Positions 15,001 through 56,192 are shown, counted from the stretch's first letter. The stretch is 64,000 nt of DNA from Caecitellus pseudoparvulus (GCA_965644315.1 CBFFRQ010000018.1:62001-126000); one strand, 5' to 3'. The notes: generated by a model from the sequence alone, not told the origin. A program made the numbers and translations.

Positions 15001-16422
15001 CACGACGCCATCAATCGGTCCGTGGGAGGAGCGCAGTGGAGCCGCGTCAAGTCCATGCCTTCGTGGGCTGCTGGGTGGACCCTGTGGAAGACAGGCCGGC
15101 AGCAAGGCTCGGTCGAACGTAGCACGGAGCAGGATGGGAAGGAACAAGGCCTGGAAGATGGTGACCCGCCGGACAGTGCCGCAAGCGAGTCAGGCGGCCA
15201 CTTCCGGGCCGCAGGTGTCTTGCACATTTCAAAGCAGGACCTGGCTCGCAGACTCTCCCCCTCCCAACGGAAGCTCGCCTTGGCAGCGTGGAGCGAGTTC
15301 AGCAGCCGCGGGGCAGGACCAGCTGCTGGCACCATCGGTCTGTCTGTGGCCAGCGCCTCTGCCGCTCTGGACGCGATTGGCATGGGCACCCTTCGTACCA
15401 GTGCGAGCAGGGAGCTCTGGCGCTTCCTCTCTCGCCCGCTGCATGGATTGCTGTCTGAAGAAGAGTGGCTGCTGGCTGTTGCGGCTGTGTTGGCGTACCA
15501 AGGCCCTGCGGTGCCCGTTCCCCAAGCCGGCTCTGCCAGCACCATGTCGGCTCAGGAGCGGGAGCAGCGAAGGCAAGCGGCAACTAAGGCTGTCATGAGG
15601 CGCCAGGCCGAAGCAGCTGCTCATTCCCAGCAACAGAGGCCCGCAGCATCTGGAGAACCTGAGGCGGCTGCACCCGAGCTGGCAGGCACGCAAACTGACA
15701 GCCCAAGTGGCCATGTTGACCGGCCACAGGACGGGGCTAGCGCAAGGTCTGCAAGTACGACAAAGTCTGGGCGCCAATCGCCAGTCGGCAGCCAGACTGA
15801 GCTGCCACACCCTGCACCCGAAAAGGACGACCAGCCGTCACCTGGTTCTGCAGAGCGGCAGGTGCCCGAGGGTTCAGCTGCAGCACGGCGCAGTGGTGAG
15901 ACGCAGACTGGAGATGCGGCCGATGGCGCTGGCACTGGTCGCACGACGGAGAGCACTGTGTCGAGGGACAGTGCTGATTCGTTTGGATTTGGGGACGTGC
16001 CAGCTCCCGTTGCTGGGGCCGGGGCTGGGGCGGGTGCTCCTGCGTTGACACTGGGTCTGACACCAGCAGTTGTTGGGCCTGCTGCTGGGGATACTCAGGT
16101 AGCCTCTGACAGCGCGCCTGCTGAAGCGGGAGACACCAGCGAACCTGCGCCAGAGCAAGCCGACGGAGTGCCGGCGGACACGCCAACCTTGGCACTGCCC
16201 ACTCCTTCGGATGGCGCAGTGGAGGATGGTGAAGCGAGTGACGAAACTAGGAAGTCAGCCACTGCACCTCCAAACTCGGCCGGTGGTCCACCAGCAGCAG
16301 ATTCCGCCAGTGGCAGTGGTGGATCAGGGGCCGCTGCCACGGCCGTGCAAGGCAGTGCCGAGGCAGATGGGGGATACGCTGAAGACGGCTTCGAGGAGAG
16401 CATTGACCTGGATGCCTCGTAG
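1..16422 (+). CDS. Giant multidomain protein (>5,464 aa, probably 5'-truncated by the window): 4 Tudor/Agenet-like repeats, 3 PUB-like domains, EF-hand(s), WD40-like and helical-repeat regions, disordered C-terminus
   Basis: Frame 1 is open from base 1 to TAG 16420-16422. Tudor-like unit GDAVEGNFRGRGKWYPGRIHRVNPDGTFHVKYADGDEE occurs four times. PUB-like segments lie at about 2371-2523 (VLQYLNDALDHP..WWKINTNDAVF..LLVKACGF), 2749-2901 and 4321-4521 (LKTLSAYLSNVTRRPDEPLYRRVNPRNTAF..LLVAAGW). EF-hand loop DADQDGKVSLFDF is at 3571-3609. WD-like endings LDFWD and LHTWD lie at about 7740-7975. Confidence 0.85.
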   Translation, partial: PLKYSSAGDLVLSIESTLPSGAGSYTAAAGGPESFAEGKEEQPTEQPEGKQVDGPPAQSASASVPPSAINDIERQYTKSAIVTGASLSRLFEKAGHPVERHALEEALQSTGAGKTKRLSIATVIDVYKETQRLAPTPGSSPARDGSAPFGNKADSHARGGGGDLREGDAVEGNFRGRGKWYPGRIHRVNPDGTFHVKYADGDEEMFAPSHRVRAAGGAQGGTPGPGHGGSGGGGGGDLREGDAVEGNFRGRGKWYPGRIHRVNPDGTFHVKYADGDEEMFAPSHRVRAAGGAQGGTPGPGHGGSGGGGGGDLREGDAVEGNFRGRGKWYPGRIHRVNPDGTFHVKYADGDEEMFAPSHRVRAAGGAQGGTPGPGHGGSGGGGGGDLREGDAVEGNFRGRGKWYPGRIHRVNPDGTFHVKYADGDEEMFAPSHRVRAAGGAQGGTPGPGHGGSGGGGGGDLREGDAVEGKASETEKPARSDGGFTVQSQGPDMDDESWRNEGWVHRMGATLLSKVEDAFFRYSSSISREVEARRNRKSLPPLPHRGRVLAVRQLPSALKDTGRRITSSRLLGWMDMFGFDTNDVLSLSEFARAFDFLFVSGEDVGKAADAVEHVWRPVPKAADTQHTSTIAPKMHADVAALSVSAAAARVLVSYGPASSHGESDEVVSDMLRAVAAGRSAAESRALETAFDFFKRADAPGAAPLSIPVAEIPSLLSSLKRRKGLARDVAAQADLVDRLEARGVSTAHVNFWEWLTVFGYVIEEAGAVVSRTVEAAVQQLRFSASTQEMRTCMQTVLQYLNDALDHPHSSSWWKINTNDAVFNSDVARLGGGYLLVKACGFTEQYVEGSTWLLLRAGFDISGIPKPSLSLQDRRLLAARRRELEGAIAELDDGMPTPAGVLRSMVHCGGLDAALAGGSLLLQYVDNVLSSPGKDKFWTISGENVVLQRRLLRLGRGVAVAGLKSAGFAPCISQEAGSTASPVFTLIGNPQDEAASGFKFPVIPEDVLQRLWHRRGVFKQELACLARLQRDGQDSMGPGFGSYSPEALSMDPGVVKTQGRPNFAADAGKAAPMGHNKQSGTSLPKRGAQASERKGHRQDLAASVAVGLAAAADAMSGSALHGRPATQHALPAERLDVTALPVQRDQVRAAREVFRSLCPPGSTLVSAADLRKHAALQGDAAGEKSAGELIAALDADQDGKVSLFDFVKSTSVALLVPGVGSGELDSAAAADFLTLLPGPGVLSAVGTLRLMASPAECVQVLLGAQSVVQQLIAAASSSADWSFHARVPGPDERAPPRWTSQATPLPAALLRTPWASLIMRTIGLVPIIPPGTGRVATWQAAARSQGGHILLRFMGDASERWKQIPSALLSKLQQLLVSLKKHRVILQLGSLPHVAAVTAAVRTLAMSAEELDSLNHDSKPVLPDGSIPSVEGSSQDTMLSMYTALKTLSAYLSNVTRRPDEPLYRRVNPRNTAFQQRMKDIPMPGAWVCPPVPGSVRVLGEHLLVAAGWVDCADGTLVLPASVDLGTLSARCLELQATLRALKPLVKQARSKSDSQASQGGELTLSRDPVRSNRGEQHSGFHSAPPTSSDVTLREEARSTAAEEQVSDLSAAQHKRGALVARAQSDRIRSLEAEVASLQEQLHARVPDKAAAVLRSMRASDRAQVLKLLKAAGMGRMPEPDSLSLAGVDSLLQQAPKAGLYDGATPASAATLSTSSLHRDASKGTTALSTTLDTRQRAGSSTRATRPSASSRSAAPLSQPTFLTTHAPAGDVQVALQSLALSVLRRSAKLSKSRAKRRGRGRKAALQPRRIRGTPSAEPPTTDLVSAKSSSGSAAALLEVAGDGETLPVQLGERVRIGAEGQEEEAFVTGVDQQSQIVQLDRPLTFDHPMGTPLVLIATPAAQKQDFLRKDLKGMVAAVLDHAIGVAVQRGEASRTSASLTNSFQTRLIPKVGLFPTELTRTTAGAGAKLFLGRGGPSWAMEDASWGTAACSWDSPVEMAAGAFFDALDFHATDSLSLQRLASALSGGHVPHVAGVPPFFQPASILHLLRSSVGSGGSSLACEAGSLETSALNQTPDQVSSALIASWRSMNTQHSCLSHSEHALRAWAVEHSSLDRNQFVGLYSRVRSLASGTQAAQLTPLPCSGESVRTLQRVLHDETRLARELCGCALDDTMLGQLASGFAAVCANVNYGVVVDSSWKRVGPQMSLPLKAVAAVIWECDGVQVPATALEQGAAAAIGEIACAPSTLLDTDDGLHASPVQGITFSAFVQLRQELIDVSTAAVEAHCAEPWQAGFAQGSDAAWPKYAPRRAALRERLRKAFNACARQGVRAMTSSELISMLSRSHEGASMLDSCTIPGCSESLRTSLERFSSRLTWGALACFIRHPAFSQSSIQCSPPRLSAPSLPGTPTHTAVCSEAGLKACMTEQGELVISRLDTPEHVHVNLQGFLPNPVQPGAVCIVWSYPQAATGTPQLWVIVSGVNCIQVDPGSGSVAGITKLNGVPEHAASNSSQIMHRGQPLASMCVWFEHFLLISWVPTTGALRVHCLLSGNLVGIAECQPKARAGPLCILTHLECLVVGHIGRLDFWDLRPALKAAADARTALQRGDAPSAPATVTCLTSAESPQWRAVAHPPEVVALSFSEPACCLAVLDAAGELHTWDVYAPLHRMASPASALHLTRHDSLRDTSEDSCDWLGTDAPLSEPEAVEMQQAVPLRYCGVVNTGGCVAGLSGILIPSSGGSSGFQPQDWMAKLQRITAKAQSAPRGSLHEGAIYIFSDGTVRAIDAPHLCPELITLHCPAALFQSQVSTRHVSESGARLQASFAALLKVHRQRALIQRVVLVAASSVPLSMLADSLLMPTVGTDAGGWRGEVPTCLASESDLKAALLRVHLACSAPAPVPEEDVGERQLHEIAEQKTYGEATAGPYVEVVYTPGDGPEECMRPAQRNRDAVGGKCIGYLKQVVDSTAYVSLAHVAEELHIAVDEVSVLGMHSVSRAARAGDWVLLDAPDELLDQYPVLRHCDPRTAGLPAPRCDSKTSALLGVTLDDGQCLLLALNRMAISRSVVSLTQQLSESEVGAAVSAAATLSAQDLLLCFHESSSLSWNLSQIRGLASLAALECSSLASRWRHAPDGELSVASALQLQRDFSAALQLTVACASAPRWVQEGLLPHAMYTALQLAFKPGTNVARLLATLTSVVAAFPPLQAACAPFVGLQSNPSKSGAPLRDSLTHTSMEACRLSFCHDEVESAEDAEVYAALWGRLRSAILRCASAPQQSPAADISAPVHVRWQVLKQAAAECVLPPALSGGHGPSICWDAVAALQKYLPSAVPHPQWQHLASSSTNAMQTSRALALGPFSATVPAGGDWPAASASQLLPLEHQLEVVSALQPVELAEAALLRTHSLTLTAAEWLAAPGGLAAVLVGQECVQEAPDGAQGQPSVGPEHSTPAHSLLVQHFAIPAADLLNCLACPQHQRLQVVPAGDSLSRLLTCLSIAEVVLCDAPADAAASRAARSGSVRSGNEGLSLRQFERLWLHLADDARAEGRDFFLSVKSLDVLACLVLLHSASAGAPPLSAHQEEKLHEEKLADLACQVFASLLRRLASDPFVEGQPAAFRLSCSAAVLSAAGALATGKAFGLDQHVQAAEDGDDLQQERCVTPATLASGAALLRFLVGRDGMGGMAAPNVSYLLQHPGVFTVGAHPHEVQDRAAGTPPVASFYFGFLPARGRTVDDSPPPDRAGTEAIAGLLAAAQSVHSGEAPAQALAAWFPGAAPSSSSVLRSSVWLAEAADVAEGLRQLMLGVHLNQIHAQRTGAAKARQTIRAALSAWLPSTTAKSRGSPSLSLDKLALVEDFALVDSLVPLLASPDQHVRAAVLLTAKDIAQASERAHHTEKSGASLPVGAVPPSAVRRLLRPFLTPQAVHGVTQRVKLSMPGTAARHLGDDGAAVQAAIACLCGIARSGMADAATWLACDVPSTLELAAHKGDPSWRRDAEQLHEDLQSGALIPALAGLLPRSTGPSTVSEGGEVQSLEEVVALLRTVLVSFSDAGLGEVLGLTVAEATGGHTAFSPASEAPLIGLSMAEDDRSTFAECLLPAVAGMPAVMHLLSVALAEEAASVANHFAVHESALRSVKLAAVSLACTPSTAPPTVDTALQTVPPIPQHRSLLHRAIAMLWELADVSWRGLLNMAPETHVAGVAASFVTRWLDWVRWSQAQGPMHSAFVLCCSAGAEHTLQPCTQRLQWLMHMASQRLPWVLSIACPARLVQVHMVDVVSATLQGIVSLRNGRLPELAQAGAPQHIDMAFTVQELRGVLAAQGLQDPLANVWAVTEWGIEWTLLGACMGWQGSSPAPDAVRGASESPMRATACHMLHARLQQDHDLVVLSHKHGAEHIHLPGLLPRAIVGRAQALQAFLGLLETSPSSPVTSSMVDCFKASGVLQCIVGDLLSSQVPVSVDFHLVPADFAPYNGSYPLRYEGVATLVQLCKSLFAQYSSAKACVEALPSPLQDDFQPRASDALHKHLTQLICQEHLARTERHRLFEFKDPQLVTTVEHVMQCLVSLGSSHILRMLSEAEVSIPDHWLHLDASGPGNAVLVTGAHSLDLRPWRNRCSLVGASEPSSLQADDGGAARPPRPPRVPEVVLPGPGHAPPSRRLAGVALPVPTQPVRGDGATPPPHTGITPSVLPPSDRSDVGSRPRLVPSADSAPRVLGGTGSRETARILVWLRPSHAGPDAATHVRAVLEAVLAGTSTETGDRKPHRVHEARAHTAPQDGVPFSATGMSEPGPGTVVECSASLATAAALWHGLQPERLASFGMVRCGFLGVGIEGFRPIDLSAVAPEEDLEQGSASGHEGEAGRAHPRPPTDSSATSTHPATLETSVAKAGDVLDHLAEGIVPVKAAFDAQLRSVLQQHDALQASLRDLRTAAMMKRGRRSEAADAESNMAKLEAQLSVLSPAVGGERQPRLPAAHAAEALQTLGLDPSNVFGTTGEHSPRTFFGFLVDVETCLLAAHDAINRSVGGAQWSRVKSMPSWAAGWTLWKTGRQQGSVERSTEQDGKEQGLEDGDPPDSAASESGGHFRAAGVLHISKQDLARRLSPSQRKLALAAWSEFSSRGAGPAAGTIGLSVASASAALDAIGMGTLRTSASRELWRFLSRPLHGLLSEEEWLLAVAAVLAYQGPAVPVPQAGSASTMSAQEREQRRQAATKAVMRRQAEAAAHSQQQRPAASGEPEAAAPELAGTQTDSPSGHVDRPQDGASARSASTTKSGRQSPVGSQTELPHPAPEKDDQPSPGSAERQVPEGSAAARRSGETQTGDAADGAGTGRTTESTVSRDSADSFGFGDVPAPVAGAGAGAGAPALTLGLTPAVVGPAAGDTQVASDSAPAEAGDTSEPAPEQADGVPADTPTLALPTPSDGAVEDGEASDETRKSATAPPNSAGGPPAADSASGSGGSGAAATAVQGSAEADGGYAEDGFEESIDLDAS
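487..1406 (+). repeat. Coding tandem repeat, 222-bp unit (74 aa), about 4.1 copies, Tudor-like domain plus Gly-rich linker
   Basis: Units start at 487, 709, 931, 1153 and 1375 (gacttgcgcgagggcgacgcagtg...). Copies are essentially identical; the one difference seen is synonymous GAG/GAA in unit 1. Confidence 0.97.
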
Positions 16423-16423
16423 A

Positions 16424-16431
16424 AATGCATT
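16424..16431. terminator. AATGCATT palindrome, putative shared 3'-end processing signal
   Basis: Begins 2 nt after the TAG of the giant ORF and lies about 35 nt past the TAA of convergent HACD. Confidence 0.6.
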
Positions 16432-16465: not shown

Positions 16466-17307
16466 TTACTGCGTCTTCTTGGCATCGTCGGCGGTTGGGG
16501 GAGCGAGCTTCTTTGTGCGCTGGCGCAGCATATGCCCGAACATGTGCACGCTGCCTGGGGGGTAGATTGCCAGGAGGGTGAACCACAGGAAGCCGTGGTA
16601 GTCGAACAGCATGTTGTAGGCGTTGGGAAGTGCGACAGACAGCGTGCCAGTCGCCTTGATGAAGGGCAGCGCAGACCAGATGGACCAGACCTCCCCTGAG
16701 ATGCCAGTGGGGTACAGCACCATGAAGAGGGAGTACCGCAGCCACAGCAGTGGGTAGGGCACGGCGTTCCACAGGTTCAGGAGGAGGAAGAGGTAGCGAG
16801 GGACCTCCACAGCTGACCAGGAGGCTGCCATGAGGGTGAAGCAGGGGCCAGTCTGCGCTGCAGGTGCGAAGTGGGTGACGCCCCACAGCACGATCAGGCG
16901 AGACAGCACTTGCAAGGCAGTAGTGGCGGGGCTGGCGCGGACCAGGCCGACCATGGCGTGCAGGACTTCCATGGCAGCCAGGGTCTGCACGCCTTTCAGT
17001 GGCAGCTCCACCTTCTCGTACAGCGTATCCGGAGTCCTGTGCAAGGAGGTCGCAGGGGGGCTGCAAAGCGGGCAGCCCCCGATCAGACACACACAGCACC
17101 ACGCACCCATCGTTTGCGTAGTGGTCCGCCAACAGGTAGATGACGTAGGCCCTGTGCAATGGGCGGGATTGTGCGTGCGGAAATTGATGCTAGCTGCCGG
17201 CGCGGGGACTGCCACAGTACGCACCACCCAGCGATGTTCACTGCATTGTACAGGGACAAGTACAAAAGCACGGGGAGGCTTGTCTTCTTCGCCTTCTTGT
17301 CTGCCAT
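16466..17307 (-). CDS. HACD: Very-long-chain 3-hydroxyacyl-CoA dehydratase (PTPLA/PHS1/PAS2 family), 3 exons
   Basis: Exons 17307-17225, 17151-17107 and 17036-16466; introns GTGCGT..CAG of 73 and 70 nt. The spliced protein has YLSLYNAVNIAGW, QTLAAMEVLH, QVLSR, WSAVEVPRY and WLRYSLFMVLYPTGISGE (catalytic Tyr/Glu motif). Confidence 0.93.
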
Positions 17308-20144: not shown

Positions 20145-20283
20145 GGGGAGCTGCGGAATTCGGCGCCTCACCCGACCTCTTCCCCAAAGAAACGCAAGGC
20201 AAGTCAAGGTCAGCGGGACCAAGGGCATCTGGTAAACCTGCCTGAACTCACAGCACAAATGTATTGTGGACGCGCGCTGTCCG

Positions 20284-27284: not shown

Positions 27285-30200
27285 ATGCACAGACCTGCGT
27301 CCGCTGCCCCGGCTGGCGTTGGGCCGCCGCCCAGTGCAGCGCTCGTATGCCTCATCGAGGATGCCTTCACGACCTTCCTGCGCCTCAAGCGGTGGCAGCA
27401 CCAAGGAGAAAGTGGGCTTGATACCGTTGACGGCACAGATTCGCAGCCCAGCTCCGTCATCCGCAAGGTATCGACGGAGTTCCGACAGTCCCTGAACGCA
27501 GCCGTGCAGGACATGCAAGATGACGGCACAGAGACTAGCGATGGCGGTGCTGTGGCTGGGAGCTTGCCGCTGTGGGAAGTGCTGGAGGGTGTGTCGTCCA
27601 TGTGGCACCTCAGCGAGGTCTGCCTCTTCCGCAGCAGTGGCGAGCCGCACAGCCACACAGCCCTGGTGGCCGTGCTCGAGTGGTTGCAGCAGTACTTTGC
27701 GTCAGGCACGTGCATGTCAGAAGACGAACTCAGCTTGCTGTCCAGCAGGCTCCTGTCCGACCAAGTCGCGACAGAGGTTCTGTGGAACGCTGTGGCGCGC
27801 TGCGTCCTGACAGGCCAGCCACACCTTGCTTCTCCCCTCATCTTTCAATGCTCACGGCTGAACTCAGACCCTCACGCGGTGTCCCTGGCCGAGCTGCTCG
27901 ATGAGTTCCCCAGTGTTCTCGCCGACGCCAGCGCTGCGCACAGCGCCACGGCTGGGCGCTGGCGCCAGTGGCGCGGACGTGTAGTGGGGTACCTTGCCAC
28001 GCTGCCGCAGGCGTCCGCTGGGGACTCTGACGCCCTGATCGCGACGAGGGCCATCTTGGAGACACTCGCATGCAAGCAGTCAGCATTCGAGGACCCTGCT
28101 CCCCAACAAACTCTGCCAGCTGCCAGCATTGTCACTAGCATGGCTGTGCACGGGCAGGTGCCGCCGGCAACCACCCCACCTTCGGCTCAGTTTGAGGTGG
28201 TGCCCCCTGCGTGGGATCAGTGCTTGTCCATTCGTCTACTGTACAGCCAACCTGCAGGGGACTGGTCAGCTGCCTCGGTCGTCGCAGCGCTGCTCGACGC
28301 CCTGAAGGGAGCTGGTGAGGAGTCAGAATTCGTCGCCACCCTGGCTGCTGTGGCTGCCGGGGAGCTTCAGCCGGCTGTTGCGTTTGCAGAAGCACACGGC
28401 GTTCCGCTGCTCGGCTTGTTCTGGGTGGACTTGTTGGCCACGGCCGCACGCTTTGGCCTCCTGCGGGGCCCACAGCCATCCCCCCGACTCGTCTCGCGCC
28501 TCGCCGACGACCTTGTGGCTGCCAGCCTCACGAGCCTGGCTGAGCTGGCCTGTCACCCAGCCCTCCCCGAGGCAGCCCCTGACGCTGACATCCAGCTCGC
28601 AGTCGAAGGAGATGCGGGGGAGGTGGCGGTGCAGGGCACACCACTGCCCCCCCGCCTCCTCCTGCTGGCTGTGGGCACGACAGTGGGGGCGGCAGTGCCC
28701 TCCCAGTCGCCCGCTGCAGATGCCTTGGTGCACCTGTGGACCAAGGTTGGCTGGCATGGTGAGGAGGAGGCCCATACCGTGTGGGCCTACGTGCAACACC
28801 TCGCGGCCGGGCTAGTGGCTCGCACGACTGGCAAGGCGGTGCGCGTGCCCACCACGGCGTTTGGCCTGCCGCACCAGCGAGCCCACCTCGCCCGCTTCGC
28901 CCGGGTGTGCGCGCAGTGCCTGTCTGCTCGCGCAGCTACTATTGTGTGGCTGCGCCTGGCCCAGGTGTGGTCACCCTCTGCCAGTGACCAAGCCGGGCTG
29001 TGGCTGCAGTCTCGTGAGGAGGGGCGGAGCGGCCTCCTGGCTTCTCTTCCTCCCCCCAGCAGCAGCTATGATACGAATGCCTTTGAAGAGTGGGCTGGGC
29101 AGGTCGGGCGTGGCACAGCCTTTGGAGCCTTGGCATGCCAGCGCGCTCTGGCCTGGGCACTCCGGTCCAACCACCAGGCAACGCTGGAGCGCGTGGGGTC
29201 GCACCTCTGCGACCTTGGACTGCAAGCATTGCAGGGCGTGCACATCACAGGCGCACCTGCTCTCGCCGGCGACGCTGGTGAGCTATTCACGCAGCTGGCG
29301 TTTCAGGCGGCGGGTGGGGCGTTGCCTGCCGCCAGTCCGGGGGAGGCGTACACACACCTGGCCGTGGCGCTGGGCTGCATGCCGCGCCTGGCCATTCCTT
29401 CTGCTGCTGCTCCCCACCTCCACTCTGCCGTGAACCTTCTCCGCCTGCTCTCTGCGCTGCATGATGTGCAAGGCTTCACCAGTTGCTTGCCCTTCACCCT
29501 ACAACAGACGTCAGTGTCTGGCCTGCCGCAAGACACCGACCCTGCCTTGCGGCACCTTTCACAACGAGAGGCTTCGAGCCACCTGGACCACTTGTGGAGA
29601 GCAGTGGGCACAGGCATGTGCGAAGTCCTGTGGCGGTCTGGCGGCCCCCTGCATGGGAACTTGGCGCCCGGATGTGTCACGTCGTCCACCGCAGACGCAC
29701 GCACTTCAGCTGCCGTGCTGGTCTGGGCACACGGCAGCGGCCTGCTGGCGAGTGCTGCATCGCCCTTCACAGCAGCACAGGCCACCTCCCTTGTGCGTGT
29801 GGGAGTGGCCCTGTTCTCGCCACTCCTGCAAGAGGCACCCCTCTTCGCGCCATACCAACTGTCCACGCCTGCGCTTGGGCTGCCAACCACTGCAAGCGCT
29901 GTGCAGGTGTACAGAGATGTTCTTGGGAGTGTAGCGCAAGCTGCCTCTCGCTCAGTCATGCTAGCTCCACACGAAGAGCAAGTGTCGGGCTGGGCCAGCG
30001 GTGACCGCGTCGGCGCTTCAGTGCTGAAGGCGCTCTCTGGGACCGTGTGGCGGTACACTGAGGGGGCACTGGGTGCAGGCACAGTGTCCCGTGTCGCACT
30101 GGGCGTTGCGCACATCCCAGTGCCCGGTTTGCCGCAAACAGGGGAGGGAGGCATGCCGCTACTCCCCCCACCCTCCGCCGGGCCCACCCCCTTCGCCTTC

Positions 30201-31172: not shown

Positions 31173-31178
31173 GCGTGA

Positions 31179-31186
31179 AATGCATT
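31179..31186. terminator. AATGCATT palindrome between convergent NUP85 and the exonuclease-like gene
   Basis: Begins 7 nt after the NUP85 TAG and overlaps the TGA of the minus-strand gene (TGAATGCATT). Confidence 0.6.
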
Positions 31187-32514
31187 CACCCCGCTGGTGG
31201 GTCCTTTTTTTTGTTTCGCTGCCGGCGCACTTCAGTCCGCAGCGAAGGCTGTGCAGAGCCGCGATGCAAGTGCAAGTGGAAGGCTTGGGTGCGCTTGCGC
31301 AGCGACAGGTGTGTTCGCTGGGGGATGAAGTTGTCATCAGCGTACCAAGAGCGCAGTGGCAAAGCCCACAATGCAGAGAGGTCGCTATCAAGCACACTGT
31401 GTTGTAAAGATGGCTGTAGCAGTCTAGATGAACTGCGAGACCGCACGCGTGGGGATGCATGCGCTTGATTCTTGTCCGCAGATTTAAAGGGCGGCTTGCT
31501 CAGGTGAGCCTGCGCCTCCTGCGTGCAGGCCAAGCGCTGAGGCAGGGAAGCCATAAGGAGGCTTGCGACACTCGACCCCACTGCCGCGTGGAGTTGCTGT
31601 GCACATGTTTCCTCGAACTCCCTCCATACCTCTCGTGCACTTGCGGCAGCAAGGGAATCACCAAACGTTGCATCGGGTGCCAGCGCCGGCTGGGGTGTGA
31701 GGACAGCAACTGCATCTGCGATGGACGCACTGTGAAGCTGCACCACCTGCTCCAGTCCATATCCCGTCAGGAATGGCGTGTCTTGGAGGAGATCGTCCAC
31801 GCACCCATGCCGAGCAAGGGTGCTCGTGCTGCGCTGCCGGCTCGGCTGCCCCACACGACGAATGCCACAGTCCGGGAAACCGATTAGGGACCAGAGGTGG
31901 GGGAGTTGCGGTGGATGGCAGCCATAGAGCAACTGTAGGGCTGTATAGGTGCCTTCAAACAGCAGGAGGCTCGGCCCTGTCATGGCGTCCCTCGGCACCA
32001 TGGCGTGCCACTCAGCTACTGACGTTGCAGGCCCAGAAACCAGAGGCCGTAGAAGGGGATCGGAACTGAAGATGACCCGGCGATGGTCAGACCCAGTGGC
32101 GTGACTTGCACTGCACCATCGGGCGATGACATCTCGCGCCTCTGCCGTGGGGCTGGCGAACAGCGACGAGCTGGGCAGGTTGGGTGGAATCCAGGCGCAG
32201 CCCTCTCTGGCCGACGCAGAGCCTGACACTTGCTGCGCCGCCCAGTGCGCGCCAAGCCAGCGAGATTCAACACATGCAGTACCGTGCTGTGCTCGCATGT
32301 GGCGCCGGGGTGTCTTGGTGCCGGCCCACACGAACTGAACGCCGTCCACGCCAGCGTAGTGATCGAGGGCCAGACACACGGCTCGGGACAGAAGCACTTT
32401 GGAGAAGGGCTGCACTGCTCGTGGGTGCACAGTCGGACTACATGATGCCAGGTGGGACGCGTACTGGAGACTGCGCCCCGTGAGGCTGGAGAGGTCCACG
32501 AGCAAACTCGCCAT
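31186..32514 (-). CDS. Degenerate 5'-3' exonuclease (Pol I N-terminal/FEN-like PIN + H3TH) homolog, probably catalytically inactive
   Basis: LLVDLSSL, EARDVIARW (cf. EADDVIATL), IFSSDPLLRPLV (cf. IVSSDKDLxQLV) and PPQLPHLWSLIGFPDCGIRRVG...LARHGCVDDLL (cf. PxQxxDYxALxGDxSDNIPGV...LxxYGSLExL) occur in the expected order and spacing. Confidence 0.6.
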   Translation of the reverse strand: MASLLVDLSSLTGRSLQYASHLASCSPTVHPRAVQPFSKVLLSRAVCLALDHYAGVDGVQFVWAGTKTPRRHMRAQHGTACVESRWLGAHWAAQQVSGSASAREGCAWIPPNLPSSSLFASPTAEARDVIARWCSASHATGSDHRRVIFSSDPLLRPLVSGPATSVAEWHAMVPRDAMTGPSLLLFEGTYTALQLLYGCHPPQLPHLWSLIGFPDCGIRRVGQPSRQRSTSTLARHGCVDDLLQDTPFLTGYGLEQVVQLHSASIADAVAVLTPQPALAPDATFGDSLAAASAREVWREFEETCAQQLHAAVGSSVASLLMASLPQRLACTQEAQAHLSKPPFKSADKNQAHASPRVRSRSSSRLLQPSLQHSVLDSDLSALWALPLRSWYADDNFIPQRTHLSLRKRTQAFHLHLHRGSAQPSLRTEVRRQRNKKKDPPAG

Positions 32515-32683
32515 GCCGCAAGAATGTCGGACGAAACGCAGGTAAAACGCTCCTGCCTTGAGACGTCGCGGCCCAAAACCCAGAAACGCACACTGACTTC
32601 CACAACTGGTTTTCCACCGTGCTTTGTGTTTTCAATAGTGTCGCTTTTCTGTGTATTGTAGCTGCGGGTGCGTGGCAAGAGCC
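32515..32683. promoter_or_regulatory. Probable bidirectional promoter (169 bp) between the divergent exonuclease-like gene and UBC7
   Basis: Head-to-head ATGs at 32514 (-) and 32684 (+); the interval is AT-richer, with T-tracts. Confidence 0.5.
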
Positions 32684-33334
32684 ATGGCAGCTCTCAAGCG
32701 CCTGCGCTCGGAGTTCAGCAACATGGTTAGGAATCCTACAGAGGGCATTGTTGCCGGGCCTGTGTCCCCTGAGAACTTGCTGGAGTGGGATTGCTACATC
32801 ATGGGACCCCCAGACACTGTGTATGAGTACGGCTTCTTCCACGCAAAGCTGACGTTCCCGAAGGACTACCCGATGTCGCCGGTGAGACGCCCCAGCTGAG
32901 GTTGCGCCCGAGGGACAGGGAAGCACGCTGGCCTGCTGCCCTACGCAGCCGAAGATGGTGTTTGACCCCCCTATTTGGCACCCGAACATTTATGACTCAG
33001 GCTCTGTACGTGAGCCAGCTGAAGAGGTCAAATGCCTTCCTGCGCATGCGGAAATCGCCACTTCCAACGCCAACACGCCTCACAGAGAGCTGGGGAAGTG
33101 TGCATCTCAATCCTGCACGCTGGCCAAGACCAGTTCGGCTACGAACAAACGTCAGAGCGCTGGACTCCGGTGCAGCGCGTGGAGAAGATCTTGCTGTCCG
33201 TCGTGAGCATGCTGGCAGAGCCAAACATCGAGTCGCCGGCTGGCGTGGATGCCGCGAAGCAGTGGCGTGATGACAGGGAGGGCTTCGCTGCCAAGGTGAA
33301 GCGCCAGGTGGAGGCCAGCCTGGACTTGTTGTGA
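32684..33334 (+). CDS. UBC7: Ubiquitin-conjugating enzyme E2 G2 / Ubc7, 3 exons
   Basis: Introns 32882-32948 (67 nt) and 33006-33085 (80 nt). The protein has [26 protein letters not shown], the Ubc7-type loop insertion, and [29 protein letters not shown]. Confidence 0.95.
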
Positions 33335-33352
33335 CCTGCTGCATGGCGGTGT

Positions 33353-33360
33353 AATGCATT
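33353..33360. terminator. AATGCATT palindrome between convergent UBC7 and PRORP
   Basis: Begins 19 nt after the UBC7 TGA and overlaps the PRORP stop (TGAATGCATT on the minus strand). Confidence 0.6.
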
Positions 33361-35384
33361 CACTGTTCTGCGGGCCACGTGGCCACCCACCGCTCGCCCG
33401 CCTCCTCTACCAGCGGCATGAACCAGCCGTGCTGGCCGCCCTGCATGCGCGCAGAGTAAGGCGGCGGCGGGCGAAAGCGGAGGGAGACCGTGGACGGCGC
33501 CGCCTCCTCGCTAGCTGCGTCGCCTTGCTCGTGCAGGCAGATGTAGTAGGTGATCTGGTGCCGCTCTCGCCACTTGAGGAAGCTCGTGGGAGCCAGCATG
33601 CGGAAGTGGTGGTCGCGCATTTGGTCATTGCTCACCACCCGCACACTGCCACGCGTCCCATCACTGCCCACACACGTGACTGCCGCGTACAGCCAGTACC
33701 AGTCATCGTTGTTCCCTCGCTGCACCTCAAACAGGCTGCCGATGGAGCGCCACCGGTCACGGTACGCAGCCAGCCGCTCCACCTCGCTGGTGCCACTGCT
33801 GGTGTCTGCAGGCGCTGTGCTCGGTGCAGAGCCCACGTCGCTGCCTGCTGCGGCAGCTGGCGGGGCAGGGGCCGGGGCGGGTAGTGAGCCGTCGTGGCGG
33901 CGCTTCTGGGCGCCGTTCGAGGCTCGCTTGAAGGGGGCAGTGTTGGTGGTGGGCTGGAACCACTTGCCATGCAGCACCACCAGCACCTTCAGTCCCTTTG
34001 ACGCGAAGTGTGTGACGACTGCGTCGATTTGAGCATGCGAGAACGCACCACCGACGTAGTTTTGGTTGTAGAAACCGACGTTGGCGGCGTCCACGAGGAT
34101 GTCAACGGGCCCGATGCTGCCCAGGAACTCCTTGAAGGCGGCGAACTGGGCCGTCCTGCGCTCCCCCTTGCAGGCCAGCTGCTCTGCTTGCTGGGCCAAA
34201 TGGGCCAGTTCGCCCGGCTGCACGTCCAAAGAGGCGAGGCTGGTGCCTGACGGCTCAAACACGCCAGAGCGGTTCACTGCGCCCTCCCCGCTCAGCCAGC
34301 GCCTGCCCCCGCCAGTGCTCTCGTGCAGCTCATACAGCGAAACCACAGCGGCTGCCGTGTCGCGTGAGACGCGGTGCACGGCCCCTGCCAGCTCAGCCAG
34401 CAGTGTTTCAGCGTAGGCCCACCAGTCTGCGTCACTGGCCGTGGAGGGTGCCGCGCCAGCTGCGCCCGCCTGGAGCCGGGCTGTGATGGCGCGCAGCATG
34501 GCGGCGTAGGCCTGCTCCGTGACAGTGACTCCCGCCGCTAGCATGCGCTGCAAGACTGCCTTGGCGGTGTCAGCGTCGCCCGCTGCCGCGAGGGCCTGCA
34601 GCACAGGCAAGAAGGTGCGGCCCCGCGCAGCGACCTGCCTGGCCGCCATGCTGTCCAGGTACTGCAGAGCGGTGTGTGGCTTGCCCACACCACACATGGC
34701 ACGGATGGCGGAGGAGTAGGCTGACTCCTTCAGCGCCACGCCAGGCGCTGCCTGGGCTGCCGCCACCACCTCCTGCGTCACCGCCGTCAACTGTTCGTGG
34801 GTCAGGGAGCAGTCTGCAGCCTTGCGCAGGAAGGTGGGTCCCCCACCAGGCGCAGCTGCCGTGGCTGCCAGCATGGACGCAGGCGTGCGCACGACGCCCT
34901 TTCGGCGTTTGGGGGCGTTGGCGGTGACGGGCGCCGCCTCACCCGTGGCAGCTGTCGCACACAGGTTCAGGAGCAGGCCGTACATGTACTCCGTGAGCGG
35001 GGCGCCCTGGGCCTTGGCTGACGCATACAGGTCCAGGGCCGCTTGGAGGTCATTCTCATGGGCTGCCTCGTTGAAACCCTTGCGCAAAGCAGCCTGCGCC
35101 GCGGCACGCGAACGTGTGTGTCTGGGCCACTGTGCAGCACAGCACCGCGCCCGAGGGAGGAGGCGGGAGGCATGCAGAATGCATGGGGAGGGAGGGTGGG
35201 GACTTACCTTGTCCAGGGGCTCCCCGGCTTTGGGAGAGCTGCCTTCACCCCCGCCAGACGCCATGTGCGAAAATGCGTGCCAGGACAGCTGCGGAAGTTG
35301 ACCGCAGTACGGTCCGCCGCAAAGGTTCGCGGATAGGGGCCTGAAGGCGAGCAGCAGCCTCGGCAGGGAGGGCAGACGCATCAT
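33360..35384 (-). CDS. PRORP: Protein-only RNase P (PPR repeats + NYN metallonuclease)
   Basis: PPR-like helices (YMYGLLLNLC, ESAYSSAIRA, RTFLPVLQAL, EQAYAAMLRA) and NYN motifs DILVDAANVG, NDDWYWLYAA and VVSNDQMRDHHF. A probable in-frame intron starts at GTAAGT 35207 and ends at 35130 or 35094. Confidence 0.93.
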   Translation of the reverse strand: MMRLPSLPRLLLAFRPLSANLCGGPYCGQLPQLSWHAFSHMASGGGEGSSPKAGEPLDKVSPHPPSPCILHASRLLPRARCCAAQWPRHTRSRAAAQAALRKGFNEAAHENDLQAALDLYASAKAQGAPLTEYMYGLLLNLCATAATGEAAPVTANAPKRRKGVVRTPASMLAATAAAPGGGPTFLRKAADCSLTHEQLTAVTQEVVAAAQAAPGVALKESAYSSAIRAMCGVGKPHTALQYLDSMAARQVAARGRTFLPVLQALAAAGDADTAKAVLQRMLAAGVTVTEQAYAAMLRAITARLQAGAAGAAPSTASDADWWAYAETLLAELAGAVHRVSRDTAAAVVSLYELHESTGGGRRWLSGEGAVNRSGVFEPSGTSLASLDVQPGELAHLAQQAEQLACKGERRTAQFAAFKEFLGSIGPVDILVDAANVGFYNQNYVGGAFSHAQIDAVVTHFASKGLKVLVVLHGKWFQPTTNTAPFKRASNGAQKRRHDGSLPAPAPAPPAAAAGSDVGSAPSTAPADTSSGTSEVERLAAYRDRWRSIGSLFEVQRGNNDDWYWLYAAVTCVGSDGTRGSVRVVSNDQMRDHHFRMLAPTSFLKWRERHQITYYICLHEQGDAASEEAAPSTVSLRFRPPPPYSARMQGGQHGWFMPLVEEAGERWVATWPAEQ

Positions 35385-35631
35385 GGCTGCGCTGAGCGGC
35401 ACCCCGTACAATTTGTAGTTTGACCCTCGCGCCCTGCAGCACACACAGCACTCACGGCTCGCAGAGCCACCCCCCACAAGCCACACTTGCAAGGGTGGGC
35501 AGCATGGGGGGGTGTTGACATCTCACCACAGACGGGCGTGTGTCCTTCACACAATCACTCACACACGCATCCCAGGCCTCGCTACATGTTGTTGACGCTG
35601 ACCTGTCAAGCCAACACCCACCGCCTTCACC

Positions 35632-36921
35632 ATGCTGCGCATCGCCACCCTCCTGGCCGCCGCTGCAGTGGCTGCTGCCACTGGCGTGCCTTCCTTCTCT
35701 CCCCAGTGGTGCGTTCTAACAGTCGCCTCGGTGCACGGCGGGCCCCCCTGGCGCGCTGCCCGGCTCTTGGCCAAGCAGCCGTGCTCGGCGTGGTGAACGT
35801 GCCAGGGACACATCCGCCTGCTGCCGCCCCCGCCCTGCACCGCGTGTCCTTGTACTTCACAGGAGTGCTGCTGTCACCCAGCACATGGTCGTGAACCAGG
35901 GTGGCCAGACCTCCGGCAACGGCAGTGCGTGCGGTGGAGCCAGCCCTGACTGCCGACCGCCACACCACACCTTCCTGCTGCCTGCCGCCGCCTGCAGACA
36001 TCTGCTGCCCCTTCAACGCCCCTGAGTGCAAGGTGCAGACTGGCTACTCTGTCTCCAAGCAGTATTTCGATTTCACCAACAACCGGTGCGTGGCCCGCCT
36101 GCAGCGGTGGCAGACGGCGAGGCGTGCACGGCACCTTCCCCTCACGGCACGTTCCCGCAGCACCGCCACGTTCTACTCCAACGGCGTCGGCGTCGTCGCC
36201 CTCTTCAACGATGGCAAGGAGTACGAGGTCAACTCCCAGGGCGCCTGCCAGTCCTACTGCCCCATCGAGGGCGGCATGCTGCGTACGTGACCACGGCTGG
36301 TGTAGTGCACTGCCGCTTCTCCCAGCCTTGCCCTGGGGCGCGCTCCTGCCTGCATGTGCCGCACCCTGCACACTTGCTGGCCCTGCACAGCTTTCGGCAT
36401 CCCCAGCTCTGCTGAGGACAAGGGCTCTGCCACCTACAACGGCAAGCAGGCTGACCTGTTCGAGTCCAGCTCCGAGGTGAGGCAACCCCGCACGTCCTTG
36501 CCACACCTCTCTGCAGCCCGACACCCACGCCCCGCCGCCTCCCTTCCCCCAGTTCCCCATCCTGAACGTCACCATGTCTGTCCAGGACTTCTACATCGTG
36601 CCTGGCTCCCAGACCAACGCTGTGCCCATTGCCTTCGTCCAGCACCTGACTCCCTTCGGCGAGCAGATCGGCGGACAGACCACCCTGTTCGAGAACTGGA
36701 CCAACGGCGCCCCCGATGCCACCAAGTTCGTCGTGACTGGCAAGGCCTCTTGCCCTGAGGCCAACAACTGCGGGGGCTCCTCCTCCGGCGGCTCTGGCAG
36801 CCACTCCGGCAGCTCTTCCTCCCCCTCTGGCCACAAGGCCCGCTACCTGGAGGCCACCGCGACCCCTGCCGGCTACTCCGCCCCCTCTGCTCTCATGCAG
36901 GCTGTCGCCAAGCGCCAGTAA
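35632..36921 (+). CDS. Secreted ependymin-related (EPDR/LolA-fold-like) protein, 6 exons
   Basis: Introns 35709-35862, 35925-35997, 36086-36160, 36283-36390 and 36477-36552 join into one ORF: signal peptide MLRIATLLAAAAVAAA, PSFSPQWSA, QYFDFTNNR, Cys pairs, FENWTNGAPDATKFVV..C. C-ending codon bias is strong. The gene model is firm; the family call is tentative. Confidence 0.7.
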
Positions 36922-37053
36922 GCACTTGACGCTGCCACCCCAGCTCCCGCGCGCACGGCCCACGCCACTCGCTGCAATGCACTGCCTGGGCTCAAATTCC
37001 ACACGCTTGCCAGTCCAGCCAGGGCAGGGTCGCGAGGGCGCCGAGTGTCAGCC

Positions 37054-38956
37054 ATGGCGTTCTCTGGCCCCAGAGTGCCGCCGCCAGCGGCGCTGGGCGC
37101 AGCGCACCGGCCCCATGTGAAGATGCTGCGCCCTATCACACGGCACCTGTGCGAGGTGGCGACAGAGCCAGAGAGCAGGCCGCTCTCCACGCGCCTGGTG
37201 CCTGCCATGGCTGCAGATGTGACGCCCAAGGACACCGGCGCTGTCATCAAGCTGCTCACGTCCATGCACTGCTTCCTGTCCGAGGTGCGTGCCTGGCAAG
37301 CCAGCTCTCGCCAAGCCAGCGGCACGCCCACGACGCCTGTTTGCTGCTGCTGCTGCGCAGTGGAGGCACTTGAAGCGGGTGATGAGGTCCATCCCGACGC
37401 CCGAAGAAGTGGCACAGGTAGAACTGGGTGCCACGCTGGACACAGTGCCTGTGCACCCGCCGCTCAGTGCGCCTGGTGCCCTGCGGGTTTTGCTGTGTGC
37501 CTCCTCTGCGTTCGCCGCTCTGCCGGCAGAGGGCGTGGAGCAGCTGCGCAGCATCACGCATGGCCTGGTGCAGGTGCAGGTCCCATGTGAGCCGCCGCTG
37601 AAGAAGGAGGAGCTGTTCAGGGAGTCCAAGTGGGTGTGGCCTCAGAACGTCCTGGCCAGCGGCCCGCCCCCTCCCTCGCCCCCCAACGCTGCCGAAACGC
37701 GTGTCATGCTGCGGTGCATGCGCCAAGCGTGGGCAGCGGCACTGGCTGCAGCTGCCAAGGGCGTCAACCCCTCCTTGTGTGCTTGCCTCATCCACGACCC
37801 CATCGCCGACACAGTCATGGCTGTGGATGTCTCGGCTGCCCGCGACCGCATGCCACGCACCACCACTGCTGGCGTGTCTCTGGCCGACGAGGGCGGGCTG
37901 CCTGGCGACCTGGCCTTCCGCGCCACGCCGGCAGGCACCCCCTCTGCAGACAGCCCACGTGTGGCGGTGGCCACAGCCGACAGCCAGGTGGTGGCGGCCA
38001 GTGCGCTGCGCAGTAGCCAGGTCACGGCCCAGCTCCCCGCGCTGTGTGACAAGTACGGGCTGAGCCTGCTGTCGCCCGACAAGCAGGAGACGTACATGCA
38101 GGGGCAGGTGCCGCACATGGTGCCGCCCCAGCCCGTGGCGGCGCCGCCGCCCCCCCGCCATGACGCTGGCAAGCCGCCCACCCCCATCATGACCACGGAC
38201 GGCCCCATCCACATCACTGACTCCCTGGAGGGGCCGCCCGCCGTCAAGCGCCAGCGCACAGACGACATCCTGCCCGGTGGCAACGTGCACCGCGGCATCA
38301 CAGTGCCCCACCCCGACCCCGCCCACACCGAGCGGGAGCTGGGCGACGCCTTTGGCCAGGCACTGCCCCTGCCGCTGTCCACACTGCACACGGCAGTCAT
38401 GCGCTGCGTGCAGCAGGTGGCAGCCCAGGACAAGGTGCGCCACGAGACGGGGCACCCGCCGTACGCCCACCGCGCTGCCTTCGCCAACAGCGTCCCTGTT
38501 GTGCCAGGCGACGCCCACGTGCCGCGCGCACCCTCCCCCCCCCGAGACCTGCACGCCCCAGCAGGGGGGGATGACGCCGCTGCCACCTCCAGCGGATCAC
38601 AGGCTGCTGCCTCGGGGGCCGCCAGTCCGCCCAGCAGCCCCGCTAGCCAGGGCAGTGGCGAGGACAGCGACGGGCCGCCTAGCCGGTACCTATGCACTGG
38701 CTTTGACGTGTACCTGACCTTTGAGCCAGAGCCCATGGACGCTATGGCCCTCGTACACGCCCGCGTGCGGCGGGTGGTGTACTGCCTGCCCAACCTGTCC
38801 GAGGGCGCGCTGGGCACGCGCCTCATGCTGCACGAACAGCGGCAGCTGAACCACCACTACAGGGTCTTCCGTGTTCTCGAGGCGCCCCAGACCATCCTCA
38901 AGTACGGCGCACCCCCACCCTTGCCTGCCCCTGGCTCAGCAGCAGCAGCAGTGTGA
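37054..38956 (+). CDS. TAD3: tRNA adenosine-34 deaminase non-catalytic subunit ADAT3/Tad3, 2 exons
   Basis: Intron 37285-37360 (76 nt). Motifs [45 protein letters not shown] and GALGT..LH...LNHHYRVF. Confidence 0.9.
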
Positions 38957-38963
38957 ATGCATT
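38956..38963. terminator. AATGCATT palindrome fused to the TAD3 stop codon
   Basis: TGAATGCATT at 38954-38963. Confidence 0.6.
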
Positions 38964-39141: not shown

Positions 39142-40147
39142 ATGGAGGCAAGCGCTAAAGCTGCGCCAGCCGTGGGCTCAAGCACAGCTGCCGCAGCTGC
39201 TGCCGCAGGCGGTGCGGGCTCACCGCAACCCGTCCAGCCCAGCCATGCCGATGGCGCTGTGCAGTGGGACCCTGACACGCTGTCTGCGACCAGGAAGCCA
39301 TCCAAGGCATGCATTTCAAGGCTGCGCAAGGAACTGAGAGCGCTGTACAAGGGTGGGAGCCGGAAGATTGCGCCGCGAGTGCAAGCAATTACCGCAGCCA
39401 GCCTGCTTTGCCACCACCACAGATCCATTGCCCGGAATCCTCGTCTTCACGGAGCCAGCGAACATGACAATCATACACGCCCTTATCACGGGGCCCAGCA
39501 GCACGCCGTACGCTGGGGGCATGCTTGCTGTGCGGGTTGGCGTGCCAGACGACTACCCTCTCAGCCCTCCTCGCGTGAAGCTGCTGACGACAGGTGGGGG
39601 CACTGTGCGCCTGAACCCGAACCTGTACAAGAACGGTAAAGTGTGTTTGAGCATCCTCGGCACGTGGCAAGGGCCGTCGTGGAGCTCGAGCCAGAGCATT
39701 GGCAGTGTCTTGCTCAGCGTGCAGTCGTTGCTGGGGGAGCACCCCGCCACAAACGAGCCGGGCTTCAACAGCAGGACCACCCCCCAGGCGTCTGCAGCGT
39801 ACGACGCCATCATCGCACACGAAACACTGCGCGTTGCTGTGCTGGATGTGCTGCAGAACCCTGAGGCACTGCTGCCTGGTGAGCTGGCGGCCGCGGTGCC
39901 AGAGTTGGCTGCTGGCTTCGCCGACACGTACAGGGACACTGTGGCGGCATGGTGCCACCTGGACGGCACAAAGTTCCAAGACCCTTTCCAGCACAACATC
40001 GGCGGCACGAACACGGGAACCTTTGCGTTTCAGGCCCTGGGACAGGCCATCGCAGAGGAGGTGGCGAAGGTGGGTGGCGGAGGGGCAGGCGCCACGTCAG
40101 ACACCGACGACAGCGACACTTCCTCTGACTCTGACAGCGACGCGTGA
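39142..40147 (+). CDS. UBE2Z: Ubiquitin-conjugating enzyme, UBE2Z/USE1-like, 2 exons
   Basis: Intron 39353-39422 (70 nt). Motifs WDP..CISRLRKEL..DPLPGI, HALITGPSSTPYAGG, TTGGGTVRLNPNLYKNGKVCLSILGTW, NEPGF and HETLRVAV. Confidence 0.88.
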
Positions 40148-40348
40148 AGAGCACGGCCCTCCGTGCACAGCACGTGCCTGCGCGTGGGGCGCCATCGTGC
40201 GGCATGTCCAGACTGGGGCTGCGCCAGTGCATGGCCGGCGCCAAATCACACCGAAGCGGAAGGACAATGCATGGCCCACCTGCACTCTCTGCCTTTGGCT
40301 TCAGGAGCACCCTTGGTGGCCCCCTGACGTCCAGCCAGGCAGTCCAGC

Positions 40349-42020
40349 ATGCCGAAGCGGAGCAGCAAGAAGAAGAAAGAGAAGAAGCCCCCGCGGGAGC
40401 CCACCAAATACGATGAGTGGGAGCCGGCGAGGATTGAGGCCCAGACGGCCAAGTTCAGGGAGCTACTAGACAAGGCGGCCATGGACCGGAGCCAAGTGCA
40501 GGTGGACAAGGTGCGGAGCTGCCGTGCACACCTGCTCCGCAAGCCACGACCTTGACGTGCTCGCCTGTCGCGCTGGACTGTGCAGGACGCCGTGCAGCAG
40601 TTCTACGACATCACACGGCGAGAAATCCGGGAGATGGAGCTGGCCATCTTGGCTAAGGAAAAGGAGATGGAAGTGCTGGAGGAGAACCACCGCGTGGAAG
40701 TGCGGGTGAGTGGAGGGCAGCTGGCTCTGGCTCACAGCACGAAACGCAACGAAACGCCCGCCCACCGCCACTCCACAGGTGTACGCCCAGAAGGTGAAGC
40801 ACCTGGAGTACGAGCACCAGAACATGCTGGCAAGGATTGCAACACAGGAGAAGGAGCTCGTCGGTGGGCAGGACGCGTCGCACAGCACGTGAGTGTCGCA
40901 TCAACGCTGGTCACCTGCCGCGCCGCTGCGACACCCAGCGCCGTGCCGTTGCCTGCGCAGGCGGGAGCTGGCCTTGCGGCGGAAGAAGGCAGAGCTGCGG
41001 CAGGCGCTGTCCGACATGGAGGCTCACCACGAGGCGGCAGTCGTAAAGGCCAAAGCTGACCACGAGCGGTACTTGGCCTCCCTGCGAGACAGCTTCCGGC
41101 GCAACATGGTGGAGCTCAAGGCTCGGTACGACGCCCGGCTGCAGCGCCTGCGGCGGGACCTGTCCCTGCAGCGCAAGGTGGAGATCCACGAGGTGGAGGA
41201 GCGCAAGAACCAGCACATCGCGGACCTGGTGGCGAACCACGCGTCCCAGTTCGCCAAGATGAAGGAGTTTTACAACGAGATCACCCGACGCAACCTGCGC
41301 ACCATCAAGGACCTGCGCGCCAAGATCGAAGACATGAACGAGAAGCAGGTGGCCAACCAGGCCCTCATGGTGGACATCGCTGAGGAGAACAAGACCCTGG
41401 CTGACCCCCTCACAGTGGCCACCGCCGAAGTGCAGAGCCTGCGGGCAGACCTGCGCGACGCGCCCAAGGACCGCCTTGCCCTGCGCAACGCCAAGGCCCG
41501 CATCCGCAAGCTGGACGACGACATCGCCGGCCTGCAGCGCTCCATCGCCCGCATGGAGGCGGTGTACGACAAGACGGAGGCGGAGAAGGAGGAGCTGCAG
41601 GAGCGCTTCCAGAGCACGGTGGAGGCGGTGCAGGGCCGTGCCGAAGCGCGCAACGAGGCCCTGGAGAGCAAGCTGGAGTCCGTGCAGGACGAATTCGACG
41701 AGAAGTCTGCCCAGCTGCAGGAAGTGCTGACGGCAGCGCAGCTGGACCCCTCCGTCATCGGCATGGTGGCCAGTCGCCTAGACAGCATCCTTGACGCCCG
41801 GAACGGCATCATTCGCGAGCTGCAGCACCAGGTGGCGCGTGTGACGAAGAGCCACAACGACGCCCTGAGGGTCTTCGAAGCCAAGCTGCGCGACATGGGC
41901 ATCCCGACGGGGGACATGCCCTTTGTGCCGCTCCCGACAGCCACCACGCTGGCTCCAGCAGGACTGGTCGCCGCGCCCAAGTTCAAAGTCAAGCCAGCAG
42001 CGGCCACGGGGGCCGGCTGA
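40349..42020 (+). CDS. GAS8: Growth arrest-specific 8 / dynein regulatory complex subunit 4 (trypanin), 4 exons
   Basis: Introns 40511-40585, 40706-40778 and 40889-40960. Motifs HRVEVRVYAQKVKHLEYEH, RKVEIHEVEERKNQHI, MKEFYNEITRRNL and KSHND; coiled-coil composition. Confidence 0.95.
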
Positions 42021-42188
42021 CAGGGCCTTGCGCAAGGCATGCAGACGCACTCCTGCGTCACTTCCCCTTCGCCTTGCAGCCTGCAATGCACCGCGTCTGT
42101 CCTGAACCACGTGCGCCGCACTGCGCGGGACTGGCGTGGGTGAGAGTGGACCAATTTCCGCGCCGCCTCATGTCTTTGATTGCCCTGC

Positions 42189-46440: not shown

Positions 46441-46488
46441 GGTGAGAGGGAAGGCGGTGGGGTAAGTGTGTGACAGTGTCGTCCATGC

Positions 46489-46496
46489 AATGCATT
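46489..46496. terminator. AATGCATT palindrome between the convergent ankyrin gene and NAA35
   Basis: Begins 49 nt after the ankyrin stop and lies 26 nt past the NAA35 stop. Confidence 0.6.
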
Positions 46497-56186: not shown

Positions 56187-56192
56187 TCGCTA

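Follow-up and report, generated by a model that had tools for sequence, protein, structure and literature searches.

AAUGCA as a probable mRNA 3'-end signal in Caecitellus pseudoparvulus and its palindromic form between convergent genes

Poly(A) signals of protists and algae include UGUAA in green algae, AGURAA in Giardia and UAAA in Trichomonas. For the AAUAAA hexamer itself, human CPSF-RNA structures show positions 4-5 held by finger 3 of CPSF30, with U3 and A6 pairing on WDR33. Here, we analyzed a 64,000-nucleotide (nt) stretch of the highly compact, GC-rich genome of the marine stramenopile Caecitellus pseudoparvulus (GCA_965644315.1, CBFFRQ010000018.1:62001-126000; hereafter the window), in which the hexamer AATGCA (AAUGCA in RNA) and the palindrome AATGCATT recur at gene 3' ends. 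Our preferred reading, to which we assign a probability of roughly 0.6, is that AAUGCA works as a poly(A)-type signal particular to this lineage and that in AATGCATT two copies of it overlap to serve the two genes of a convergent pair.

Compared with AAUAAA, which is read by CPSF through WDR33 and fingers 2-3 of CPSF30, AAUGCA is likewise a sense-strand hexamer shortly past the stop codon that is retained in the mRNA upstream of the 3' end. The two hexamers agree at four of their six positions (A1, A2, U3 and A6) and differ at positions 4-5, where AAUGCA has GC in place of AA; the variants found here fit AAUNCA. Cleavage may follow at a shorter distance here. As for the other protist and algal signals, a non-AAUAAA hexamer would dominate upstream of poly(A) sites.

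The closest described arrangement is found in yeast, where bidirectional termination zones centred on palindromic UAUAUA are shared by convergent genes (bioRxiv 10.1101/2022.11.02.514956; see also PMC6420913). Both cases involve a palindromic element between convergent genes that is readable on both strands, and terminator sharing in a compact genome. However, the sequence here contains GC, the median convergent gap is 34 nt compared with yeast zones of ~120 bp, and the UAUAUA hexamer is itself palindromic whereas AATGCATT superposes two asymmetric hexamers. The novelty that an earlier sequence-only reading of the window had claimed for a bidirectional palindromic poly(A) element was thus overstated; what is new is a lineage-specific hexamer whose overlapped form is an 8-bp palindrome, a concept with a yeast precedent. 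A second comparison is offered by another stramenopile, Blastocystis, with its UGUUUGUU element and extremely short 3' untranslated regions (UTRs), in which stop codon and 3'-end signal nearly touch (PMC4159000). Stop codons almost touch the motif here as well, but the Blastocystis element lies downstream of cleavage and outside the mRNA. A downstream element of that type was rejected for AATGCA because the motif is present inside mRNA. In the -40 to -1 region of Aspergillus oryzae transcripts, AAUGCA is among the top over-represented hexamers together with AAUGAA, CAAUGC and AAUACA (PMC3111234), as a minor element behind AAUGAA, whereas here it is the top hexamer. None of the papers found in our literature search identifies AAUGCA as a stramenopile poly(A) signal, and a search on AATGCATT itself returned primer noise only.

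AATGCA downstream of stop codons

Motif counts were made over the genome (30.6 Mb, 215 contigs), and gaps and gene ends were analyzed in a 295-kb set comprising the window, 200 kb of contig C13 and 31 kb of contig C1. Stop codons were placed by codon-usage log-odds segmentation together with spliced RNA contigs, as gene calling by open reading frame (ORF) length was too noisy in this GC-rich DNA. Spliced genes were treated exon by exon or via stored protein ids. Genome-wide, AATGCATT occurs 1011 times, compared to 22 for the reversed word and 109 for ATTGCAAT, a palindrome of the same composition. AATGCA occurs 14,744 times versus 1,756 for its reversed word. These counts correspond to ~13,700 motif sites, of which the majority are non-palindromic.

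When all hexamers were ranked without bias in the 100 nt past 104 long-ORF stops, AATGCA (8.9x), ATGCAT (7.9x) and TGCATT (7.1x) took the top three places, with 43 copies of AATGCA observed versus 4.8 expected under a first-order Markov model. At secure 3' ends (i.e., those facing a convergent neighbour), AATGCA was present at 28/66, where 1.8 were expected. AATAAA followed 0/104 long-ORF stops within 100 nt, bearing out its reported absence from gene ends, and TGTAA followed 1/104. The single-base neighbours AATGCC, AATGCG, GATGCA and TATGCA showed no enrichment. Conversely, AATCCA, AATTCA and AATACA were mildly enriched, the AATACA class on the sense strand past stops, and the motif family can therefore be written as AATNCA. 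The two positions 3' of the hexamer are frequently T, and the surrounding sequence may contain a longer consensus, GCAATGCATTGC. Beyond this the flanks of different sites are unrelated to one another, which rules out a repeat family. Copies of AATGCATT were also found ~100 bp apart at G000:C5:11620-11823 (11620, 11720 and 11816) and 22 bp apart at C8:8128-8157; such tandem repeats on small contigs, and not gene ends, probably account for a small share of the 1011 copies in the genome.

The motif is oriented. Within 120 nt of the upstream stop, tandem gaps hold 14 sense half-sites and two palindromes versus three antisense copies (binomial p = 0.004), and in divergent (promoter-only) gaps the motif is at background level. 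In the 295-kb set, a count relative to stop codons and split by gap type, of the kind that the sequence-only reading had proposed genome-wide as a check, turned out in its favor. AATGCA shares with AAUAAA-type signals a position on the sense strand downstream of stops with 9-15x enrichment. It also shares with them an avoidance of the sense strand of coding sequences, to a moderate degree: coding sequences of the window and C13:1-200000 contain 14 sense and 59 antisense copies, and codon-order and synonymous shuffles predict 26-31 sense copies, which amounts to a depletion of about two-fold. The most avoided sense hexamers relative to synonymous shuffles were GCTAAC (1 versus 22 expected) and GTAAGC (2 versus 24). 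They resemble branch-point and 5' splice-site signals and suggest strong selection against cryptic splicing, and the avoidance test therefore does detect RNA-processing signals. The antisense form (TGCATT on the coding strand) is over-represented in coding sequences (59 versus 31-36 expected) and evenly spread along genes, which could reflect termination of antisense transcripts or a codon-context effect.

The palindrome between convergent genes

The window has 60-70% GC and long ORFs densely packed on both strands. Exact search confirmed the five copies of AATGCATT that the sequence-only reading had located there; dinucleotide shuffles of the window gave a mean of 0.39 copies and a maximum of two, with five or more in 0/100. 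All five lie 0-48 nt from a stop codon and the coding segments contain none, which agrees with their description as non-coding and within about 50 nt of stops. Placement of four copies between convergent pairs was likewise borne out (gaps of 13, 25, 43 and 81 nt), the fifth (38956) lying in a tandem gap. At three of the five, the TGA stop is fused to the palindrome so that the gene strand reads TGAATGCATT. The palindromes, half-sites and variants of the window are as follows.

16424..16431, unstranded, AATGCATT: 1 nt past the TAG (16420-16422) of a giant plus-strand ORF and 34 nt from the HACD stop (minus strand, 16466-16468); gap of 43 nt
31179..31186, unstranded, AATGCATT: 6 nt past the Nup85 TAG (plus strand, ends 31172); gap of 13 nt
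33353..33360, unstranded, AATGCATT: 18 nt past the UBC7 TGA (plus strand, 33332-33334), overlapping the PRORP TGA (minus strand, 33360-33362)
38956..38963, plus strand, AATGCATT: fused to the TGA of gene 37370-38956; the next plus-strand gene starts near 39464
46489..46496, unstranded, AATGCATT: 48 nt past the ankyrin TGA (plus strand, 46440) and 25 nt from the NAA35-like stop (minus strand, 46522); gap of 81 nt
36976..36981, plus strand, sense half-site AATGCA: 54 nt past the stop (36921) of a spliced, highly expressed six-exon gene
40266..40271, plus strand, sense half-site AATGCA: 118 nt past the stop of a UQ_con gene (40147); known from sequence only
42085..42090, plus strand, sense half-site AATGCA: 64 nt past the GAS8/DRC4 stop (42020)
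50757..50762, minus strand, sense half-site AATGCA: 34 nt past the RAD23 stop (50797-50799, minus strand)
20258..20265, minus strand, variant AATACATT: 18 nt past the stop of a 2106-aa minus-strand gene
59736..59743, minus strand, one-mismatch copy AGTGCATT as read on the gene strand: sense half-site AGTGCA, with an exact AATGCA antisense (plus strand)

The palindrome at 31179 overlaps the TGA of an exonuclease-like minus-strand gene ending at 31186, so that the minus strand reads TGAATGCATT, and the arrangement at 16424 is also present in L071 and L072, which are contigs of other isolates. All four tandem-gene half-sites had been listed by the sequence-only reading and are present. Both of its one-mismatch copies exist too, although at 59736-59743 it is the antisense strand that carries the exact hexamer. 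The gene names it gave agree with Pfam matches in the window (PTPLA/HACD, Nup85, PRORP, GAS8, ankyrin, NAA35-like, RAD23-like and two GT10 fucosyltransferases).

Across the 295-kb set, 33 convergent gaps were found. Both genes have a sense AATGCA within ~100 nt in 10/33 of them, and this is provided by a single AATGCATT in nine and by two separate hexamers in one. The 13 palindromes of the set are distributed over convergent (10), tandem (2) and divergent (1) gaps, and motif sites are palindromic more often in convergent than in tandem gaps (10/22 versus 2/16; Fisher p = 0.04). In terms of density, the 4.8 kb of convergent gaps contain 10 palindromes, compared to a genome mean of ~0.03 per kb. 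A palindrome between convergent genes is also where a shared terminator of the yeast UAUAUA type is located. Placement thus favors the proposal that self-complementarity lets convergent genes share one site, and by extension both genes would use it.

RNA 3' ends, rival explanations and mechanism

RNA was looked up for window positions 31100-37090 in assembled Logan contigs, which carry no A tails. Contigs from X1, X4 and X23 skip GT..AG introns and therefore represent RNA; X22 is DNA of a strain 1-3% divergent and reads straight through. For the six-exon gene, RNA contigs end at 36982, 36983 and 36996 (depths of 229, 28 and 86), directly or shortly past AATGCA (36976-36981). For PRORP, the contig ends fall at the palindrome (33353-33360), namely at 33351 and 33357. 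In a fourth data set, L027, a spliced contig of RAD23 mRNA, reaches 11 nt past its AATGCA and ends there; the runs behind L027 and L028 are SRR18354346 and SRR18354348. Exact-protein look-ups for further mRNA contigs yielded RNA for RAD23 only, all other matches being DNA scaffolds from this organism or its relatives. Overall, in three genes with 3' UTRs of ~9, 51 and 61-75 nt, the RNA holds the motif and ends 1-15 nt beyond it. AATGCA is thus kept in mature mRNA near the 3' end, as is the case for AAUAAA-type signals.

RNA contigs also revealed that UBC7 (32600-33334; introns 32881-32947 and 33006-33085) and the six-exon gene (35564-36996; introns 35708-35861, 35925-35997, 36085-36159, 36283-36390 and 36475-36550) are multi-exon genes missed by ORF lists, with all introns GT..AG. 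In run X1, one high-depth contig connects 36263 with 36644; the junction has non-canonical AT..GC ends and the loose ends of the contig are unrelated. It is probably a paralogous transcript partly placed on the six-exon gene.

The closest rival accepts AAUGCA as a poly(A) signal and denies that the palindrome is shared: AATGCATT would arise from a preference for UU 3' of AAUGCA, or from overlap in short gaps, with only one of the two genes depending on it. The frequent T 3' of the hexamer, the hinted consensus GCAATGCATTGC, the three palindromes in tandem or divergent gaps and the detection of RNA for the PRORP partner only all fit such an origin. Against it, stop-proximal sense sites in tandem gaps are seldom palindromic (2/16, compared with 10/22 motif sites in convergent gaps), a single palindrome is used by 9/10 pairs with AATGCA on both sides, and palindromes are dense in convergent gaps. 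We consider this reading unlikely. Somewhat more improbable is that the motif is not a cleavage signal but a 3'-UTR site for a regulatory RNA-binding protein acting on stability, translation or localisation. Such a site would be sense-specific, present in mature RNA and confined to a portion of genes, which matches the ~40-50% observed. Yet RNA of three genes with differing UTR lengths ends 1-15 nt past the motif, even at 86-229x depth, frequent fusion to the stop codon leaves no other UTR, and other candidate signals, AATAAA and TGTAA among them, show no enrichment.

As the motif forms a perfect 8-bp palindrome that clusters between convergent genes, it could also be a DNA-level element, bound by a dimeric protein with half-sites as weak sites, that blocks RNA polymerase II or sets a chromatin boundary; yeast has roadblock terminators, for example Reb1. 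Elements of the Reb1/Nsi1 type are independent of orientation and lie beyond the RNA 3' end. Here, half-sites are biased in orientation toward the upstream gene (16 versus 3) and the motif is transcribed into mRNA, and for these reasons the DNA-bound roadblock offered as an alternative by the sequence-only reading does not fit. Depletion from coding sequences is moreover restricted to the sense strand, and palindromes make up only 1011 of the ~13,700 sites, leaving a DNA-level role very improbable. Finally, some genomic copies stand ~100 bp apart on small contigs, as a repeat-derived pattern would have it, but an origin by chance, composition or repeats is scarcely credible given the 9x excess over the same-composition palindrome, the 9-15x excess over Markov expectation in flanks and the unrelated flanks of the sites.

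Several observations weigh against AAUGCA as a shared poly(A)-type signal. AATGCA is present at only ~42% of secure 3' ends and AATNCA at ~48%, so that about half, very tight pairs included, lack AATNCA within 105 nt; these ends must therefore depend on a different signal or on degenerate variants. Genome-wide, the variant palindrome TGAATTCA shows no enrichment (139 versus ~110-120 expected), and 13 palindromes in 295 kb underlie the statistics on sharing. The coding-sequence depletion ranks 213 of 3268 hexamers, and others, such as AGTGCA, depart equally from shuffles. Contig ends are lower bounds, as illustrated by UBC7 contigs that stop 37-65 nt before their own stop codon. An RNA end at a palindrome was seen for one partner only (PRORP), and the palindrome at 31179 has no RNA coverage. 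Poly(A)-tailed reads or contigs were not found: a metagenome scan for an A run behind a gene-specific 3' end gave zero hits, and the same scan without the A run gave two DNA contigs only. The idea of AAUGCA(UU) as the 3'-processing element of this lineage accordingly holds for its strand specificity, its proximity to stops and its presence in mRNA, and was overstated as to universality. Convergent genes only 6-12 nt apart without a recognisable 3' motif occur at 56186-56193 in the window and at 27469-27482 and 181822-181830 in C13, and at C13 112064-112086 and 170108-170137 convergent ORFs overlap by 23-30 nt, again without one.

Under the preferred reading, AAUGCA, with weaker AAUNCA variants, would be the main upstream cis-element for mRNA 3' cleavage and polyadenylation, replacing AAUAAA. 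It would lie 0-100 nt past the stop, often fused to TGA, and stay in the mature mRNA, with cleavage predicted to follow within roughly 15 nt or slightly more. As its TGCA core is self-complementary, signals on opposite strands can superpose as the 8-bp AATGCATT, and this merged site would give each convergent transcript its own sense-strand AAUGCA; AATGCAGG is AATGCATT altered so that the signal stays on one strand only. CPSF would presumably be the reader. The genome encodes CPSF73 and Fip1, and a candidate CPSF30 is given by a profile match to PF18345 (G000:C24:50226-50513). Matches to PF00642 were rejected as CPSF30 since, on reading the translated frames, they belong to other CCCH proteins; we take them to be Cwc24-like, U2AF35-like and TTP-like, plus one C2H2 zinc-finger-like protein. 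CFIm25 (PF13869) was not detected in a profile search of the genome, although such a blank does not prove absence, and with CFIm25 undetected the UGCA core is unsupported as a counterpart of the UGUA site bound by CFIm. As a tentative scenario, the poly(A) hexamer may have been recoded at the two positions contacted by CPSF30 zinc finger 3 along with co-evolution of the reader protein, the resulting TGCA core enabling the two-strand palindrome and genome compaction selecting for a self-complementary signal.

For annotation, a simple rule based on the motif can mark gene ends, very short 3' UTRs and stops in this genome and its relatives, where ORF-based gene calling is unreliable. As a natural variant of AAUAAA altered at positions 4-5 alone, AAUGCA could help to probe hexamer specification by CPSF30 and WDR33. 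In terms of compaction, two terminators would be fitted into gaps of 13-80 nt, a parallel to the yeast bidirectional zones achieved with an 8-bp site.

Related genomes and additional observations

In three environmental genomes of relatives, where PRORP is syntenic and 47-49% identical, the same hexamer family occurs past some stops, less frequently than here. Among these relatives, the stop is fused to AATGCA for PRORP in L021 and for HACD in L070.

Proteins deposited for Symbiodinium sp. KB8 fall into the same 90%-identity clusters as proteins studied here (window 16469-17110, 33363-35444 and 41016-42017, and L019:6116-7597), namely CAE7034621.1 (Hacd2), CAE7578858.1 (PRORP1) and CAE7810782.1 (DRC4), and CAE7605248.1 (ALDH12A1) is an exact match. 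The Symbiodinium sp. KB8 assembly thus probably holds contaminating contigs of this protist. Separately, the first 4-5 kb of C13 (L001, G000:C13:1-5000) differ from the remainder of the contig in being strikingly AT-rich, also in the flanks of their ORFs, and may represent a chromosome-end element.

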